Part shown: positions 33,501 through 63,500 of the stretch, in pieces
Position numbering within the stretch: the first letter of the stretch is position 1
Layout: each line of letters begins with the position of its first letter
NCBI GenBank assembly: GCA_002269645.1
Contig: NIVC01000543.1
Coordinates: 481,795-545,794 of the forward strand
Reading direction: 5' to 3'
Origin: Macrostomum lignano
Lineage: Eukaryota
DNA: 64,000 nt
The notes under the pieces: generated by a model
Seen by the model: the letters and a program-made list of their open reading frames with translations, nothing else
What the model was told of the DNA's origin: nothing
Databases searched by the model: none
Translations under genes and position numbers: made by a program

Positions 33501-36500
33501 TAGCCTTCCCCAGTTCAACTTAGCCAGCCTAATTTCCCCGTCCAACTCTCTTCCCTACTAACCTCCCCAACTCCTCATATCGGTTTGTCCCCAAAAACGT
33601 GCGCGCACGCAGCGAAGAGAAAGAGAGACAGACAGACAAACACCCGGACACGCAAGTGCAGACGTATTTTCTTCCAAAAAACTTCATCTCTGGATCTTAA
33701 GCCACTTCTCTTACTGTCGCTTCTGCACACCGTTGAGCCGCAAAAAAACTGTCAGCAGCTCAGTAAACTTGACAAGCCGAGAAAGCTGACAAAGATCAGC
33801 AAGTCCTAAGCTGCAGCAAAAATATACCTTGCGAGATAAGCATAAATATTGTTGCTGCCGTTGCTGCATCGTTCGCTTCCGAGCGCCTCTGACGGGCACC
33901 TTCACGGCTTGCATCTTCCCGAGGATGAAACCGCATCGTGACGTCAGTAGCAGCAGCCACTGCAACTGCCCCAGCAGCAGTAGCAGCAGCCGCGGCAGCA
34001 GCTCTAGCAGCAACTGCTTCAGCTAAAGTGCAGTTTAGCCAGTCAATCCTTTTTTTTATTAAAGCCAAGCGCTTAGCCAGACCCGTAGAATCTTTAGTCC
34101 TGTTACTGCCATGACTGTGCACCAGCGTCGAAATGATCTTGTCAGAATGGCCACGCTGACGGTGGACGGAGGCGAGTCCCTCGACGACAGCGCAGGCAGA
34201 GGCGGCCCCGGCGGTGTCAGCATCGGCGGTGGGGGCGCTGGCGGTGACTCTAAGAACGCCTCGCTGCGTAACATCGCACGCCGGACGCTGAACATGGGCC
34301 TGCCTGGGCTCGGCAACACGCCCACCCGCTCGCTGTGCATCTTCTCCGAGGAGAACATCATCCGGAAGTACGCCAAGATCATCATCGAGTGGGGATATCC
34401 TTTTATCGAAGCTGCTGTTTCTAGAAGCGGGGCTTTTTTTAGGCTGTTTTGGTGCCTATTGGAGACCAAGTGACGTCATAGGGCGTCATGCGTGTTATTT
34501 GATGTGCTGGCAGAAACCCATAGGACTCCCTGGAACCCTGGACATATTCTCATGGTGCATTACTCTTTAACAGCTATCAGGGTATCTCTGAGACAGTGTG
34601 TGAAGCCAACCCTTAACTGCGCGTTTGAGTTTTGCTTTTTTTCCTTAACCAAATCAAATCAAAATGCGTCGCTCGCCTGCACGCCATTCGAGTACATGGT
34701 GCTGCTGACTATCATTGCCAATTGCGTGGTGCTCGGCGCTGAAGAGCACCTGCCCAGGGGCGATAAAACTCCACTGTCCACCAAGCTGGTGAGTAGTAAC
34801 CGCTTTTAGGGACGTTGCTATGCTATAGAGTATCCGTTACTGTAGAGTGATGCGTTTTCAAACTCATGTCTTTTAAGGGGCTGCTATCAGTCTCACCATT
34901 CGCGTTGATAGATGCACAGATAAACAGCCATCAGGTTATAGTGCCTTTGTGTCCTTTTCTAGGCAGACTTTCAGCAGTTTTAAATGAGAAAAATGTCCTA
35001 TAGTGGGCGATCAGATAATCCTTGTCCTTGATCAGCACACTGATCCGTCTGGGAATGAGGCAGGATTTCAATTTTCACCCCATCGACATTTCCCCAGTTA
35101 GACGGGCGCTTTCTGTAGAATAGCAAAATAAATATCTGATTATGGTTAGCTCAGTCACGCTCCCTCGCCATCAACCCAAAGGACATGACGGAGCGCTACT
35201 TCCTGGGCATCTTCTGCGTGGAAGCCCTCTTAAAAATTGTCGCTCTGGGCTTCGTGCTCCACAAAGGCGCCTACCTGCGCAACATCTGGAACATCATGGA
35301 CTTCGTTGTCGTCGTCACGGGGTAAGTCGGACGAAATTTAAATGAAAAAGTGTAAATGCCTTTCGTTGCTGAGGATTGTGCGCGAGTGTGTCTGGAGTTA
35401 ATATTAAAGTTCAATAGCAAGTATATAGCGCTATTTTAACTCACGTGGGGAAATATTTTCACGTAAACTGATTGATCATTTTTCAGGTATGACACAGTGG
35501 CAGACTTATACGTTAACTAATCACCTTCAGTGCAGATTTTTTACCTTTTTTCAGGATTCAGAATTATTTTTCTCGCTAAAATTTACGATCTAGTAGGAAC
35601 GCTATCAAAAGTGCATTCATGATTACATTCGTACGACGCTCAAAGCATCCGGGAAACGAGGTAAACCGCTACCCAACTTGCATGACGTCGAAGAACTTTT
35701 TGGCACACAAGTTTAGAAGCCACCTCTTACTGCATGAACACATCCCTTACTGCCAGCAAGATGATTGTCTCTGATTCAAAATGATTGCTTTTTGTCGGAT
35801 TTACTTTACTCTTATTATATGCACTACTTGAATCTGCACAGATTTTTTTCTCTGCTTTGCTTCTACTTGGGAGCGCAACTCCTTTAGGTAATTTTCCCAT
35901 TACGAGTAAACATCGAGTGGGGTCACAGAGGGCTTCTAGCTGCTTCCTGTCAGTAAATAGCAGAGCATACCGCGTAGGTTAATACAACAGAGGGATTTCT
36001 CTGCACTCAGCTTACTTAAACTAAGCCCAACCCCCATCGACGAAGCATGAGCATGAGTAATGCAGAGCACAGCAATGAAACGCATGCGCCAACAACTCAC
36101 GGAGTTGCCTATCCGCCAGCAAGCCCGCATTCAGAAATTTCGGGCCCGCTGTTTTAGAAGAAAATCAACCCGTAGAGAAAGTTATACTCGCCAGAGTTTT
36201 TAGTAAGTGCCCGCAAGCTCAACCCGCTGCCTTACCGCACAGCAATTCCATCGTAGATCGGTGGCACCCGGCAGCTTTCACTGAATTTCAGGCTGCTAAA
36301 GAATGCACCCCGGTCCAAGCCTCATGCTGTCCGCTGTCACTTTCCGCTTGTTGCAGGCTGTTAGCGTTTATCCTGCCAACCTTTGACCAGCCGGCACTGA
36401 GGGCGCTGAGAGTGCTGAGGCCCCTCAAGCTGGTTACAGGGTTTGAGAGTAAGTCTACCCGTCAGTACTGAGACGTTTGTTAAATTAGTTTTAATGGCCA

Positions 36501-60500: not shown

Positions 60501-63500
60501 GTCCAATAAAAAGGCTTAGAAATCCAGTCTGAATCAGAATCTCTACCGAAGCTCCATCGATGCTCCTCATCAATTCCGATGTCCCACAGTCGAACGCCGG
60601 TTCAGGGCAACGCCAAGAACTTCAGCACCATCAAGAGTCTGCGCGTGCTGCGCGTGCTGCGGCCACTGAAGACCATCAACCGGGTGCCAAAACTGAAGGT
60701 GCGTCTCTTCTGTTCTCTCTAGGGAAAAATCCTGGGATACTGGGACTAATGCTCCCAAATTCCTTCCTGCCATCCTCAGGCGGTGTTCAACTGTGTCGTC
60801 AGCTCGTTGAAAAACGTATTCAACATTCTGATTGTCTACTGCCTGTTTCAATTCATCTTTGCGGTCATTCGCGTGCAGCTGTTTCAAGGAAAGTTTTTCT
60901 ATTGCAATGACGCATCGAAAAAGACGAGAAGCGAGTGCCAGTAAGTACTGATCAGACTCGATGCCAAAATTTCAATGCCATGGTAATGAGTCAGTTTACT
61001 AGAAACTCAAGTTCGGGAGCTTCTCTATACGTTCTAGGGTTAAAGAACTCATAGAAAAAGTAGATACGAATTCTTCCAAAAGATAAAATAAAGTTATTGG
61101 AAGTCGTTCTCTGGAAGAGTACAGTTCTAACATTGATGAGTACCGTTACGAGCACAGGGCAGCCGTATGAGTATGAGTGCTGTGTCTGCGTACAGTATTG
61201 GCGCGCCTGCATGGCTCAGGAGTCTGCGGAACGGGCAGAATGCCGTCAGCGCTGGCTGCGCGACGACGTCGCCGAAGCCGTTGCGCCAGGTGCCCGCGGC
61301 CCTCCTGAAGTTACTAGTATTAGTAGTATTAGCCGTACGGGAGCATTCCTGTCCACGCGTCCAACCGAGCCGCCGACCCAACAAACGCAGGGGTTACTTC
61401 TTCAATTATGAAACGGCGCCAAACGGCGAGACTTCAGTTTCCGTCGACGCGCGCAGCTGGCGCGCACAGTGCTTCCGCTATGACGACGTTTTCATATCGT
61501 TGATAACGCTGTTCACTGTCACCACGGGAGAGGGCTGGAACTTGTAGGTTGATCAGCCCAGCTTCCCTTCCTTTACCCCGAAACCCTTGGTGGCTGCATT
61601 CCTCATTCAATCCGGTTCATTGGGAAGCGCATTGTTGGGACGCACAAGTGTAGTCATGCTAAACCTAGCATTCGGTGAATGGTGGTAGAGTTTTGGTCAA
61701 GGACATTTTTTACTCTAAATTTGCTGTCGCATAGCTTCAATGCAGCTTTAACACGTTTTTTATTTATCTAATCCTCTAACAACAAAGGGGATTTTATTTT
61801 CACTACGACGGCGACGCCGAAAAGCCCGAGATGCGCGAGCGGCAGTGGAGCAACCAGAGCTTCCACTACGACAACATCTACAACTCCATGCTCACCTTGT
61901 TCACCGTGTCCACTGGCGAAGGCTGGCCAACGTAATGTCCAACCCAGTTTCTGCAAAGTCCCTAGGCTTGTACTTGGCCAGTGTTGTCTTGCACGATCTG
62001 TTGTGTATTTTCTGTTCTTCATATTGATAGCCGCTTGCAGACAGTGCTGCATCTCAGATTCCTCAGTCGCAAATAGAGCGACAGACTTTCACTATTCTCT
62101 CATCATTGCTTTGCTTCTCCACTTATTTTATCTGTGCTAGGCCAATACGTACCTGACCTCACGTTCTGCCCAATGCCCCAATAACAACAACCTTACTCCC
62201 TGCCCACTCACTCTCTCGTGTAACACCAACCACACTCCCTGCCCACACTCTCTCATGTAACACCAACCACACTCCCTGCCTGTAATTAATATCAGTAAAC
62301 ACAGACAGACTTTTATTTAGAATTGAACTACACAAAACCAGCAGGAGAGGGCGCAGGGCCCAAAATTCTATATTTATAAGACATTGCCTAAATTAGGGGG
62401 GGTGTTGCATTCACGATAAGAGACGGGGTGAATGATTAGAGCACGAGAGCGCGAGGGGGTAGAAAAATGATAACGAAGAGCAAATAAGCGTGCAATGGGG
62501 AGTGGGTACAAGGTGCGACCAGAAGGCAGAGAAGGCAGAGATAGAGATAAGCACAGAGAGGCAGCCAATCAGAATTAAGACATACAAACATACGCGAGAA
62601 GGTGAACAAATGAAGAAAGTCGCTACACTGCCCACCCACACTCTCTCGTGTAACACCAACCTCACTCCCTGCCCACTCACACTCTCTCGTGTAACACCAA
62701 CCTCACTCCCTGCCCACCCACACTCTCTTGTGTAACACCAACCTCACTCCCTGCCCTCTCACTACTCTCTTGTGTAACACCAACCTCACTCCCTGCCCTC
62801 TCACTACTCTCTTGTGTAACACCAACCTCACTCCCTGCCCACCCACACTCTCTCGTGGAACACCAACCACACTCCCCACCCACACTCTCTCATGTAACAC
62901 CAACCTCACTCCCTGCCACCCACACTCTCTCATGTAACACCAACCTCACTCCCTGCCCACCCACACTCTCTCGTGTAACACCAACCTCACTCCCTGCCCA
63001 CTCACACTCTCTCGTGTAACACCAACCTCACTCCCTGCCCACCCACACTCTCTTGCGTAACACCAACCTCACTCCCTGCCCTCTCACTACTCTCTTGTGT
63101 AACACCAACCTCACTCCCTGCCCTCTCACTACTCTCTTGTGTAACACCAACCTCACTCCCTGCCCTCTCACTACTCTCTTGTAACACCAACCTCACTCCC
63201 TGCCCTCTCACTACTCTCTTGTGTAACACCAACCTCACTCCCTGCCCTCTCACTACTCTCTTGTGTAACACCAACCTCACTCCCTGCCCTCTCACTACTC
63301 TCTTGTGTAACACCAACCTCACTCCCTGCCCTCTCACTACTCTCTTGTGTAACACCAACCTCACTACCTGCGCACTCACACTCTATGTTTGAACTATTTA
63401 TGAATAACTTTATTATTTTTTATGAATTTCTTGATTGATTTTTTCACCAGCTTTTCTATCGCCCTAAAGTTCCTATGCTTTGCGCATGATATTATGCAAC

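Follow-up and report, generated by a model that had tools for sequence, protein, structure and literature searches.

Nine candidate alternative exons in four clusters of a flatworm Cav2 calcium-channel gene, with a predicted U12/U2 hybrid intron in the domain II filter cluster

The DNA examined in the present study is a 64-kb stretch of contig NIVC01000543.1 (positions 481,795 to 545,794 of the forward strand; hereafter the window, numbered from 1 to 64,000). From position 34147 to the window end its + strand encodes what is, by its predicted product, a Cav2 (non-L-type) voltage-gated calcium-channel alpha-1 gene, in which nine putative alternative exons are arranged in four clusters, all on the + strand: two exons for segments S3-S4 of domain I (IS3-S4), three for IIS3-S4, two for the domain II filter and S6, and two for the domain III turret and filter. 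We consider it likely that this is a Cav2 gene with four either/or exon clusters, for which the evidence falls into three tiers. Tandem exon duplication would have produced the four clusters of homologous alternative exons, and exactly one exon per cluster would enter each mRNA. The resulting channels would differ at the voltage sensor of domain I, at the voltage sensor of domain II, at the filter flank, P2-S6 linker and outer S6 of domain II, and at the turret and filter flank of domain III.

The gene structure was obtained by six-frame reading and splice-site inspection, with exon placement by tblastn using the Macrostomum lignano protein BOX15_Mlig012532g2 (P0241), and an M. lignano genomic locus (L003) was used as comparison. 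The window covers the 5' three-quarters of the gene, from the N-terminus (ATG at 34147) to IIIS6, and every exon in this interval was placed by P0241. Pfam identified three Ion_trans domains in the window product and, together with the exon map, indicates that domains I, II and III are complete; domain IV lies beyond the window end and is found downstream in the M. lignano ortholog. The Cav2 identity given in the earlier note is upheld by several lines of evidence. In a comparison with solved structures, domain II scored 465, 457 and 452 bits against human Cav2.2, Cav2.1 and Cav2.3, respectively, as opposed to ~343 bits for Cav1 and <=297 for Cav3, and the top named database matches of the channel product are type-A/cacophony or P/Q/N channels. 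An AID motif (QQxExxLxGYxxWIxxxE type) is present in the I-II loop, encoded by the exon at ~40990-41190, and the filter motifs TMEGW (I), T[G/S]EDWN (II) and TGEGW (III) place the filter Glu in domains I-III in all exon copies, the domain IV filter being outside the window.

Protein database searches recovered nothing from the window species itself, and the best match is P0241 (1764 bits vs 1502 for the runner-up). A neighbour-joining analysis with our own code, based on 332 residues of constitutive exons, grouped the window product with P0241 in 100% of bootstraps and the flatworms together in 53%. Constitutive transmembrane exons have 87-100% protein identity between the window and M. lignano. 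Synonymous divergence (dS) is ~0.4 to >2, near saturation, and non-synonymous divergence (dN) relative to L003 is 0.02-0.15. The introns of the two loci are unalignable; exons alone align, alternative ones included, with the exception of one intronic block containing a U12 branch site. Given the near-saturated dS and the unalignable introns, the window gene would therefore come from another macrostomid-type flatworm that is fairly distant from M. lignano, or else be an old paralog.

The earlier note had placed the duplicated exons between 36357 and 61931, the outer limits of the first and last alternative exon, and its exon counts, coordinates, frames, phases and splice sites were all confirmed. 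Adjacent homologous exons of the same phase, each with its own splice sites, were found in all four clusters. All nine exons are open in the frame set by their constitutive neighbours, and lengths within each cluster are equal modulo 3. Every exon has an AG acceptor and the donors are GT, except for the first IIS3-S4 exon, which has a consensus GC-AG donor (AG/GCAAGT). A tblastn search of the window with P0241 recovered each copy at E = 3e-13 to 3e-8 apart from the first IS3-S4 exon, IS4a (E = 0.002), whose match is weak because the P0241 isoform carries the second, IS4b; compared with M. lignano, the IS4a peptide matched its ortholog at 2e-16. The same search found no further duplicated exon of the gene in the window, the I-II loop exon being single. 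Nine such exons are far beyond chance, and the duplicates are tandem alternative-exon candidates rather than decay products.

The first cluster follows the constitutive IS2-S3 exon (35182-35321), the last 2 nt of which start a Gly codon completed by either IS4 exon. IS4a (36357-36448, 92 nt; 93.5% identical to L003 15062-15154) lacks the outermost S4 Arg, which is replaced by Pro, and IS4b (37578-37678, 101 nt; 97% identical to L003 15753-15854 and present in P0241) is of the canonical type; the IS4-S5 linker and IS5 follow on a constitutive exon (39615-39764). Judging from established channel structure, voltage sensor I would lose its outermost gating charge if IS4a were used, and its S3-S4 linker would be rewritten. 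In domain II, the constitutive IIS2-S3 exon (42535-42647) ends in phase 0 and precedes three exons of 113 nt: IIS4a (42931-43043, with its GC donor at 43044; 89% identical to L003 20260-20373), IIS4b (43646-43758; 84% identical to L003 21053-21166, in P0241) and IIS4c (44799-44911, AG acceptor and GTTAGT donor), the last present in the window only. These variants differ chiefly at the end of S3 and in the S3-S4 linker, plus three S4 positions. A constitutive exon for the IIS4-S5 linker and IIS5 (45509-45640) and another for the S5-P turret and pore helix (45850-45922; 100% amino acid identity to M. lignano) lead to the third cluster, whose two exons each encode the filter, P2 and most of S6: II-filter a (46063-46186, 124 nt; L003 24271-24390, in P0241) and the canonical II-filter b (46751-46868, 118 nt; 95% identical to L003 24786-24902). 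The C-terminal half of IIS6 is again constitutive (47209-47309), and the last exon of the II-III loop, placed with P0241, is at 49255-49353. The fourth cluster lies between the constitutive IIIS5 exon (60780-60940), whose final 2 nt belong to a Gln codon, and the constitutive exon for the domain III P2-S6 linker and IIIS6 (63581-63781). It comprises two turret/pore-helix/filter exons, IIIPa (61391-61543, 153 nt), present in the window only, and IIIPb (61788-61931, 144 nt), which aligns with L003 33429-33569.

Every exon copy keeps the filter Glu and, in domain II, the Asp, and no copy changes the EEEE residues; the pore-loop swaps in domains II and III leave the filter residue itself unswapped. 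II-filter a has Ser for the Gly preceding the filter Glu (LTSEDWN), with the P2-S6 linker and outer S6 also rewritten, and IIIPa has a rewritten turret and Asn for the near-invariant Pro after GEGW. The proposal of alternative selectivity-filter exons in two domains consequently stands in part: filter-bearing exons are duplicated, but Glu and the adjacent Asp are unchanged and it is the neighbouring residues that differ. Similarly, the statement that the copies retain S4 arginines or the filter Glu applies to the filter Glu throughout but not to IS4a, with Pro in place of the outermost Arg. The suggestion that the 5' exon is divergent and the 3' exon canonical in three clusters does not fit the IIS4 cluster, where 5' exon a is of the canonical type, being most similar to the Cav2 of other animals and to one (paralog 1) of the two Cav2 paralogs of neodermatans, the parasitic flatworms. 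The figure of up to 24 channel variants is arithmetic and not a finding, as the case for IIS4c and IIIPa being used is an indirect one.

Conservation in M. lignano argues that most of these exons are maintained. The order of IS4a/b, IIS4a/b and II-filter a/b in L003 matches that of the window, and the two loci share the IIS4a GC donor (43044; L003 20374), the LTSEDWN variant and U12-type donors in the II-filter cluster. Weak GC-AG donors such as that conserved after IIS4a often accompany regulated splicing. Differences between the window and L003 at codon positions 1/2/3 are 4/0/18 for IS4a, 2/1/15 for IS4b, 2/3/18 for IIS4a, 9/4/18 for IIS4b and 1/2/19 for II-filter b, and this third-position excess is direct comparative evidence of purifying selection on these five exons; maintenance by selection is weaker for II-filter a. 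Because they are kept in M. lignano amid unalignable introns, with changes concentrated at third positions, six of the nine exons are regarded as genuine. Purifying selection rather than decay, as proposed in the earlier note, therefore holds for the conserved pairs, with II-filter a relaxed; IIS4c and IIIPa show no such third-position excess. IIS4a/b and II-filter a/b would constitute the second tier, predating the split between the window lineage and M. lignano and kept since by purifying selection.

Some of these exons also appear to be expressed. The M. lignano GenBank models were built from RNA-seq assemblies (PMC5730564), and P0241 contains IS4b, IIS4b and II-filter a, that is one exon per cluster, which suggests that at least these three are expressed in M. 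lignano. The presence of II-filter a in the RNA-seq-derived P0241 therefore argues that the Ser variant is not a dead copy. For the variant domain II isoform, protein database searches, which appear to list only matches ~0.7-1.75 times as long as the query, found no fragment derived from a transcript at more than 77% identity.

Exon lengths and splice-site types suggest how joint inclusion could be prevented. The lengths in the IS4 (92 and 101 nt), IIS4 (113 nt each) and II-filter (124 and 118 nt) clusters are not multiples of 3, and double inclusion or double skipping would therefore shift the frame in three of the clusters. In the II-filter cluster both exons are followed by U12-type donors (GTATCCTT at 46187 and 46869; GTATCCTT and GTATCCTA in M. 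lignano) and both have U2-type acceptors, while the donor of the preceding turret exon is an ordinary U2-type GTGAGC. A motif scan identified a U12 branch-site consensus on the + strand (TTTTCCTTAACC, 47151-47162), ~49 nt upstream of the IIS6 exon. Its TCCTTRAY at 47153 is the sole copy in the II-filter cluster and is conserved at L003 25992, and the scan found no U12 branch-site motif between the two II-filter exons in either the window or L003. The intronic block containing the branch site is itself conserved (window 47148-47164 vs L003 25987-26003). With a U12 donor on exon a and a U2-type 3' end before exon b, the intervening intron would therefore be a U12/U2 hybrid. Neither spliceosome should remove such an intron, which would leave an either/or choice between II-filter a and b, and duplicating the filter exon together with its U12 donor would at once create mutual exclusion.

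The same U12 intron is found at this position in Elysia and Taenia and is lost in Schistocephalus. From this distribution we take the U12 intron to be ancestral at the domain II filter position, and it appears to have been converted to a U2-type intron in the Schistocephalus paralog. At the Schistocephalus solidus locus (L001, 55840) a GTACGC donor stands in place of GTATCCTT after the domain II filter exon. Removal of this intron by the minor spliceosome is predicted from consensus motifs conserved in the two Macrostomum-type loci, Taenia and Elysia. The U12 motif scan also identified an AT-AC U12-type intron 1 (34395-34682, + strand), with donor ATATCCTT at 34395, and a branch site TCCTTAAC (34642-34649) leading to a …CAC 3' end (34642-34682), the same motifs occurring in L003 at 10225 and 10401. 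This intron is flanked by exon 1 (34147-34394; N-terminus, MATLTVDGG…IIEWG), delimited by P0241 tblastn, the U12 scan and its boundaries, and by the constitutive IS1 exon (34683-34788). An Rfam scan of the window gave no match and no small nuclear RNA gene, a result that is uninformative on the minor spliceosome.

For the IS4 and IIS4 clusters, docking/selector pairing was considered as a further route to exclusivity, and a cross-species intron alignment revealed no conserved intronic blocks besides the U12 branch site. A seeming 37-nt extension upstream of IS4a was lost on realignment, leaving just one chance 8-mer complement. An RNA-pairing mechanism for these two clusters is thus unsupported, though not disproved.

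IIS4c and IIIPa would form the third tier, specific to the window lineage. Both exons are intact, with open frames, AG/GT sites and hallmark motifs (the S4 R-x-x-R ladder and TLFTV.TGEGW, respectively), and IIS4c is 67% identical to exon a at the nucleotide level. Exons within clusters keep 55-67% nucleotide identity, while the 200-nt flanks of paralogous exons are no more alike than shuffled controls, apart from a faint similarity in the sequence that follows IIS4a and IIS4c; neutral drift since duplication is therefore hard to accept. The GC content of the two exons (0.54-0.58) is like that of the remaining exons and, for IIS4c, exceeds both flanks (0.38 and 0.43), whereas the upstream flank of IIIPa is richer (0.61). 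Counted by hand against exon a, the codon changes in the S4 half of IIS4c are mostly synonymous. Support for selection on IIS4c is no more than moderate, and use of IIS4c and IIIPa in mRNA is probable.

Several observations weigh against the reading of four functional either/or clusters. L003 has no counterpart of IIS4c and a single domain III turret/filter exon, and among the changes attributed to the branches of IIS4c (11/7/7) and IIIPa (8/6/10) third positions are not in excess. In neutral simulations, drift was rejected only when half or more of the divergence was placed on the IIS4c or IIIPa branch, and the outcome was decisive only for a clock-like division of the divergence. IIIPa combines the Asn after GEGW with an extra turret Cys. 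II-filter a is fast-evolving, with 68% amino acid identity and 9/10/15 codon differences between the window and L003, and the window copy has Arg for the usual Asn in the FGN-Y of IIS6. The domain III exons (153 and 144 nt) are both in frame, so that exclusivity is not forced by sequence in this cluster. Between the U12 branch site and the 3' splice site there are 30-50 nt, a spacing shared with AT-AC intron 1 of both species and with Taenia; vertebrate U12 branch sites are typically nearer the 3' splice site. The P0241 isoform derives from short reads, and linkage between distant clusters is beyond its reach. Finally, mutual exclusivity and the use of every window exon are matters that we infer from genomic sequence, and the IIIS6 exon carries a 1-nt frameshift.

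Many of these points would be accounted for if only the conserved pairs were functional, and IIS4c, IIIPa and possibly the window II-filter a were unused or decaying pseudoexons, limiting the repertoire to at most 2 x 2 x 2. This is possible, and we hold it to be rather unlikely. It fits with the lack of M. lignano orthologs of IIS4c and IIIPa, with their lineage-specific changes not being third-position-enriched, with simulations that are not decisive, and with a series of odd residues (GEGW-N and the extra Cys in IIIPa, RRD and RAFK in IIS4c, FGR in II-filter a). Decay does not, however, readily explain why IIS4c and IIIPa keep open frames, splice sites and hallmark motifs, why exon identity persists when the flanks are randomised, why codon changes in the S4 half of IIS4c are mostly synonymous, or why the single M. 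lignano exon is matched about equally well by IIIPa and IIIPb (61% and 64% amino acid identity, respectively), the two being 43% identical to each other. As for II-filter a, it retains 75% nucleotide identity over 138 nt where neutral sequence is unalignable, together with its frame, Ser-Glu-Asp-Trp-Asn and donor, and on this comparison is under relaxed constraint yet conserved.

The frameshift raises a more radical alternative, namely that the locus is a pseudogene copy or that the duplicates are an assembly artefact of collapsed or mis-joined paralogs. The frameshift falls at a C-run (63630-63631, GGTG-CC-GAC vs GGTG-CCC-GAC in M. lignano) and, if real, would mean that the gene copy is broken; Macrostomum genomes are moreover rich in recent duplicates (PMC5730564). 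Against this, all other exons are intact and, at saturated dS, have 84-100% amino acid identity to M. lignano. The frameshift is a CC vs CCC homopolymer difference and is most likely an assembly error, because the M. lignano assembly has a similar single-base shift in the same gene. Collapsed paralogs, which the earlier note had raised as a way to refute its reading, are unlikely, since an independent M. lignano assembly shows the same tandem order, as does Elysia for IS4, and each copy has its own distinct introns. We therefore regard a pseudogene or artefact as very improbable and retain the reading of a Cav2 gene with four either/or clusters.

The history of the clusters reaches beyond macrostomids. 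The mollusc Elysia chlorotica has an IS4a-type and then an IS4b-type exon in tandem (L002, 13756-13845 and 16612-16722), although the annotated Elysia protein uses the IS4b-type and not the a-type exon; the IIS4 and II-filter exons at this locus are single. Models from Aplysia and Bulinus contain an a-type-related IS4 (…SLDQPAVRSLRV…). Because Elysia has both types in the same order, the IS4 pair is, on this comparison, ancient and not a macrostomid invention, and it forms the first tier. The alternative sites cited from the Aplysia Cav2 paper do not include it. In neodermatans, one Cav2 paralog has an IS4 of the a type (Dicrocoelium, S. rodhaini, Spirometra, Schistocephalus and Mesocestoides), and paralog 1 combines IS4a with IIS4a in Schistocephalus (L001), S. 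rodhaini, Mesocestoides and Dicrocoelium (P0005). The WQ… signature of IIS4b is common to paralog 2 (Dicrocoelium P0122, Taenia, Mesocestoides and S. mattheei), with which the window IIS4b shares 27-30 of 38 residues, as compared to 22-24 of 38 with IIS4a of its own gene. Inspection of individual loci revealed only IS4a-type and IIS4a-type exons in Schistocephalus (L001) and only IS4b-type and IIS4b-type exons in Taenia (L004, paralog 2). The ancient IS4 pair, the match of the a/b exons to neodermatan paralogs and the placement of the domain II cluster on a U12 intron are points that go beyond the earlier note. The Dicrocoelium Cav2 gene spans 212 kb.

An ancestral flatworm gene would probably have carried both a/b pairs before gene duplication and reciprocal exon loss, and this is the simplest reading of the exon distribution. 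In a tree of constitutive exons the neodermatan paralogs group together at 45%, which puts their duplication later than the macrostomid split, vs 12% and 4% for the alternatives, a weakly supported result that is compatible with the ancestral-pair scenario. We tentatively put forward a fuller account, to which we assign well below an even chance: an ancestral rhabditophoran would have had one Cav2 gene with matched a+a and b+b isoforms of the domain I and II voltage sensors, which gave rise to the two parasite genes as each duplicate retained one matched set. Macrostomids would have kept the modular gene and added pore-loop alternatives altering permeation or block, namely the conserved Gly-to-Ser exchange beside the domain II filter Glu and, in the window lineage, another domain III turret/filter exon, the domain II choice being hard-wired by the U12/U2 hybrid intron. 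If this is true, two splice isoforms would have turned into two Cav2 genes.

Exon choice might, on the other hand, be coordinated across clusters so that only a few fixed channel types are made. The earlier note proposed this as 'variant' and 'canonical' channels built from all-5' and all-3' exons, and that form does not survive: IIS4a, a 5' exon, is canonical, and P0241 joins the 3' IS4b to IIS4b and the 5' II-filter a. In a modified form, IS4a would go with IIS4a and IS4b with IIS4b. The neodermatan paralogs fix exactly these a+a and b+b combinations, and the M. lignano model joins IS4b with IIS4b, but that combination derives from a short-read assembly (PMC5730564). The cross-species intron alignment, moreover, disclosed no conserved intronic pairing elements. 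Coordination, even as modified, seems to us unlikely, slightly more so than the pseudoexon alternative.

The expectation that domain IV may add clusters receives some support from two tandem candidate IVS1-S2/IVS2 exons in M. lignano (L003 34976-35097, …NTVFTIVFTIECILKMIGLDIR; ~35900-36041, …NSAFTVMFSVECILKILAFGPK). They resemble a mutually exclusive IVS2 exon pair reported in molluscs (PMC5818475). P0241 ends at these candidates owing to a one-base frame shift in the M. lignano assembly. Outside flatworms, the oyster Cav2 models P0257 (Magallana gigas) and P0275 (Saccostrea) have LTGADWN in domain II, with Ala for the filter Glu. The Ala may stem from an alternative exon or from a paralog, or the filter may really have changed.

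A non-LTR retrotransposon (LINE) occupies 49800-54740 on the - strand of the intron before IIIS1, with an ORF at 51172-54237 encoding an endonuclease and a reverse transcriptase (Exo_endo_phos and RVT_1); it is not part of the channel and is irrelevant to the exon clusters. (CTGT)n-type arrays are found on both sides of it (49343-49669 and 55315-55686), and the element may have landed in a microsatellite, or one may be part of its termini. Intronic tandem arrays at 47340-47940 and 62140-63440 read as THSLSP/LTPCPL-like repeats, and an LTHSDP-like array lies in an intron of the same gene in M. lignano (L003 32640-33250), which suggests a possible common satellite family. Positions 1-15500, ahead of the channel gene, are dominated by tandem arrays (2.6-4.1 kb, 4.3-4.9 kb and 10-15.5 kb), where inverted arrays at 10039-11968 (-) and 13804-15488 (+) enclose a third at 12.1-13.4 kb. 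Minus-strand ORFs at 56-4123 resemble exons of another gene.

In most invertebrates fast transmitter release depends on a single Cav2 gene, the best-studied diversification of which is the pair of IS4 and I-II loop exon choices in the fly. The present locus represents a far more modular solution in an early-branching flatworm, involving two voltage sensors and filter-bearing pore segments, with one exclusion mechanism, the U12/U2 hybrid intron, readable directly from DNA. That alternative exons in one lineage correspond to separate paralogs in another bears on the trade-off between splicing and gene duplication. The parasite paralogs are candidate drug-target channels, and defining their sensor variants could guide functional work. 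M. lignano is amenable to transgenesis (PMC5730564), which makes exon-deletion tests of the Drosophila kind feasible.

The closest known parallel is Drosophila cacophony, in which IS4A and IS4B belong to the same gene family and occupy the same position as the IS4 pair described here, as two adjacent ~99-nt IS3-S4/S4 exons differing in S4 charge. Choice between them sets the activation voltage and active-zone localisation of the channel (PMC11828482). The signatures of the pairs are unlike: the spiralian a-type has the outermost Arg replaced (…DQPALRALR…), whereas the dipteran variants differ by K/R, and orthology of the pairs is not established. As far as that study describes it, fly cacophony is without IIS4 or pore-loop clusters (PMC11828482), and the window is in turn without a duplicated I-II loop exon. 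Tandem homologous exons are also known in vertebrates, where exons 37a/37b of Cav2.1 and Cav2.2 tune the gating or modulation of high-voltage-activated channels and lie in the C-terminal EF-hand. In Cav1.2, the pairs 8/8a, 21/22 and 31/32 are mutually exclusive. The vertebrate Cav pairs are thus placed at IS6, IIIS2, IVS3 and the C-terminal EF-hand, and none is in IS4, IIS4 or filter-bearing exons.

Alternative pore-loop exons have precedents in related channel families. In Cav3, the mutually exclusive tandem exons 12a/12b of Lymnaea and other invertebrates, likewise with an effect on permeation, swap the turret only. Invertebrate NALCN has mutually exclusive pore-loop exons in domain II or III (15a/15b and 31a/31b) that alter permeation (PMC3557258; PMC4436565), and these exchange the filter residue, E vs K (PMC4436565). 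Unlike those of NALCN, the window exons keep Glu and Asp. The domain II pair differs instead by G->S before Glu, in the P2-S6 linker and in S6, and the domain III pair in its turret and in the residue that follows GEGW. Among open-access papers, we found no report of pore-loop alternative exons in Cav2, nor of these flatworm exons.

The organisation of the II-filter cluster has its nearest counterpart in a different gene family, the JNK genes MAPK8-10, in which the choice between exons 6a and 6b is held to be enforced by a U12/U2 hybrid intron (PMC1874599). The likeness extends to an upstream U2 intron, a pair of homologous exons with U12 donors, a U2-type 3' end in front of the second of them and a single true U12 intron downstream; the window differs in having its branch site 30-50 nt from the 3' splice site and in being predicted from consensus motifs. 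The Cav2 paralogs of parasitic flatworms, for which the schistosome literature uses the names Cav2A and Cav2B, offer a comparison of another kind: they carry the same a and b sequences as separate genes with a single exon each (Schistocephalus L001 and Taenia L004), whereas in the window and in M. lignano these sequences lie within one gene as alternative exons.

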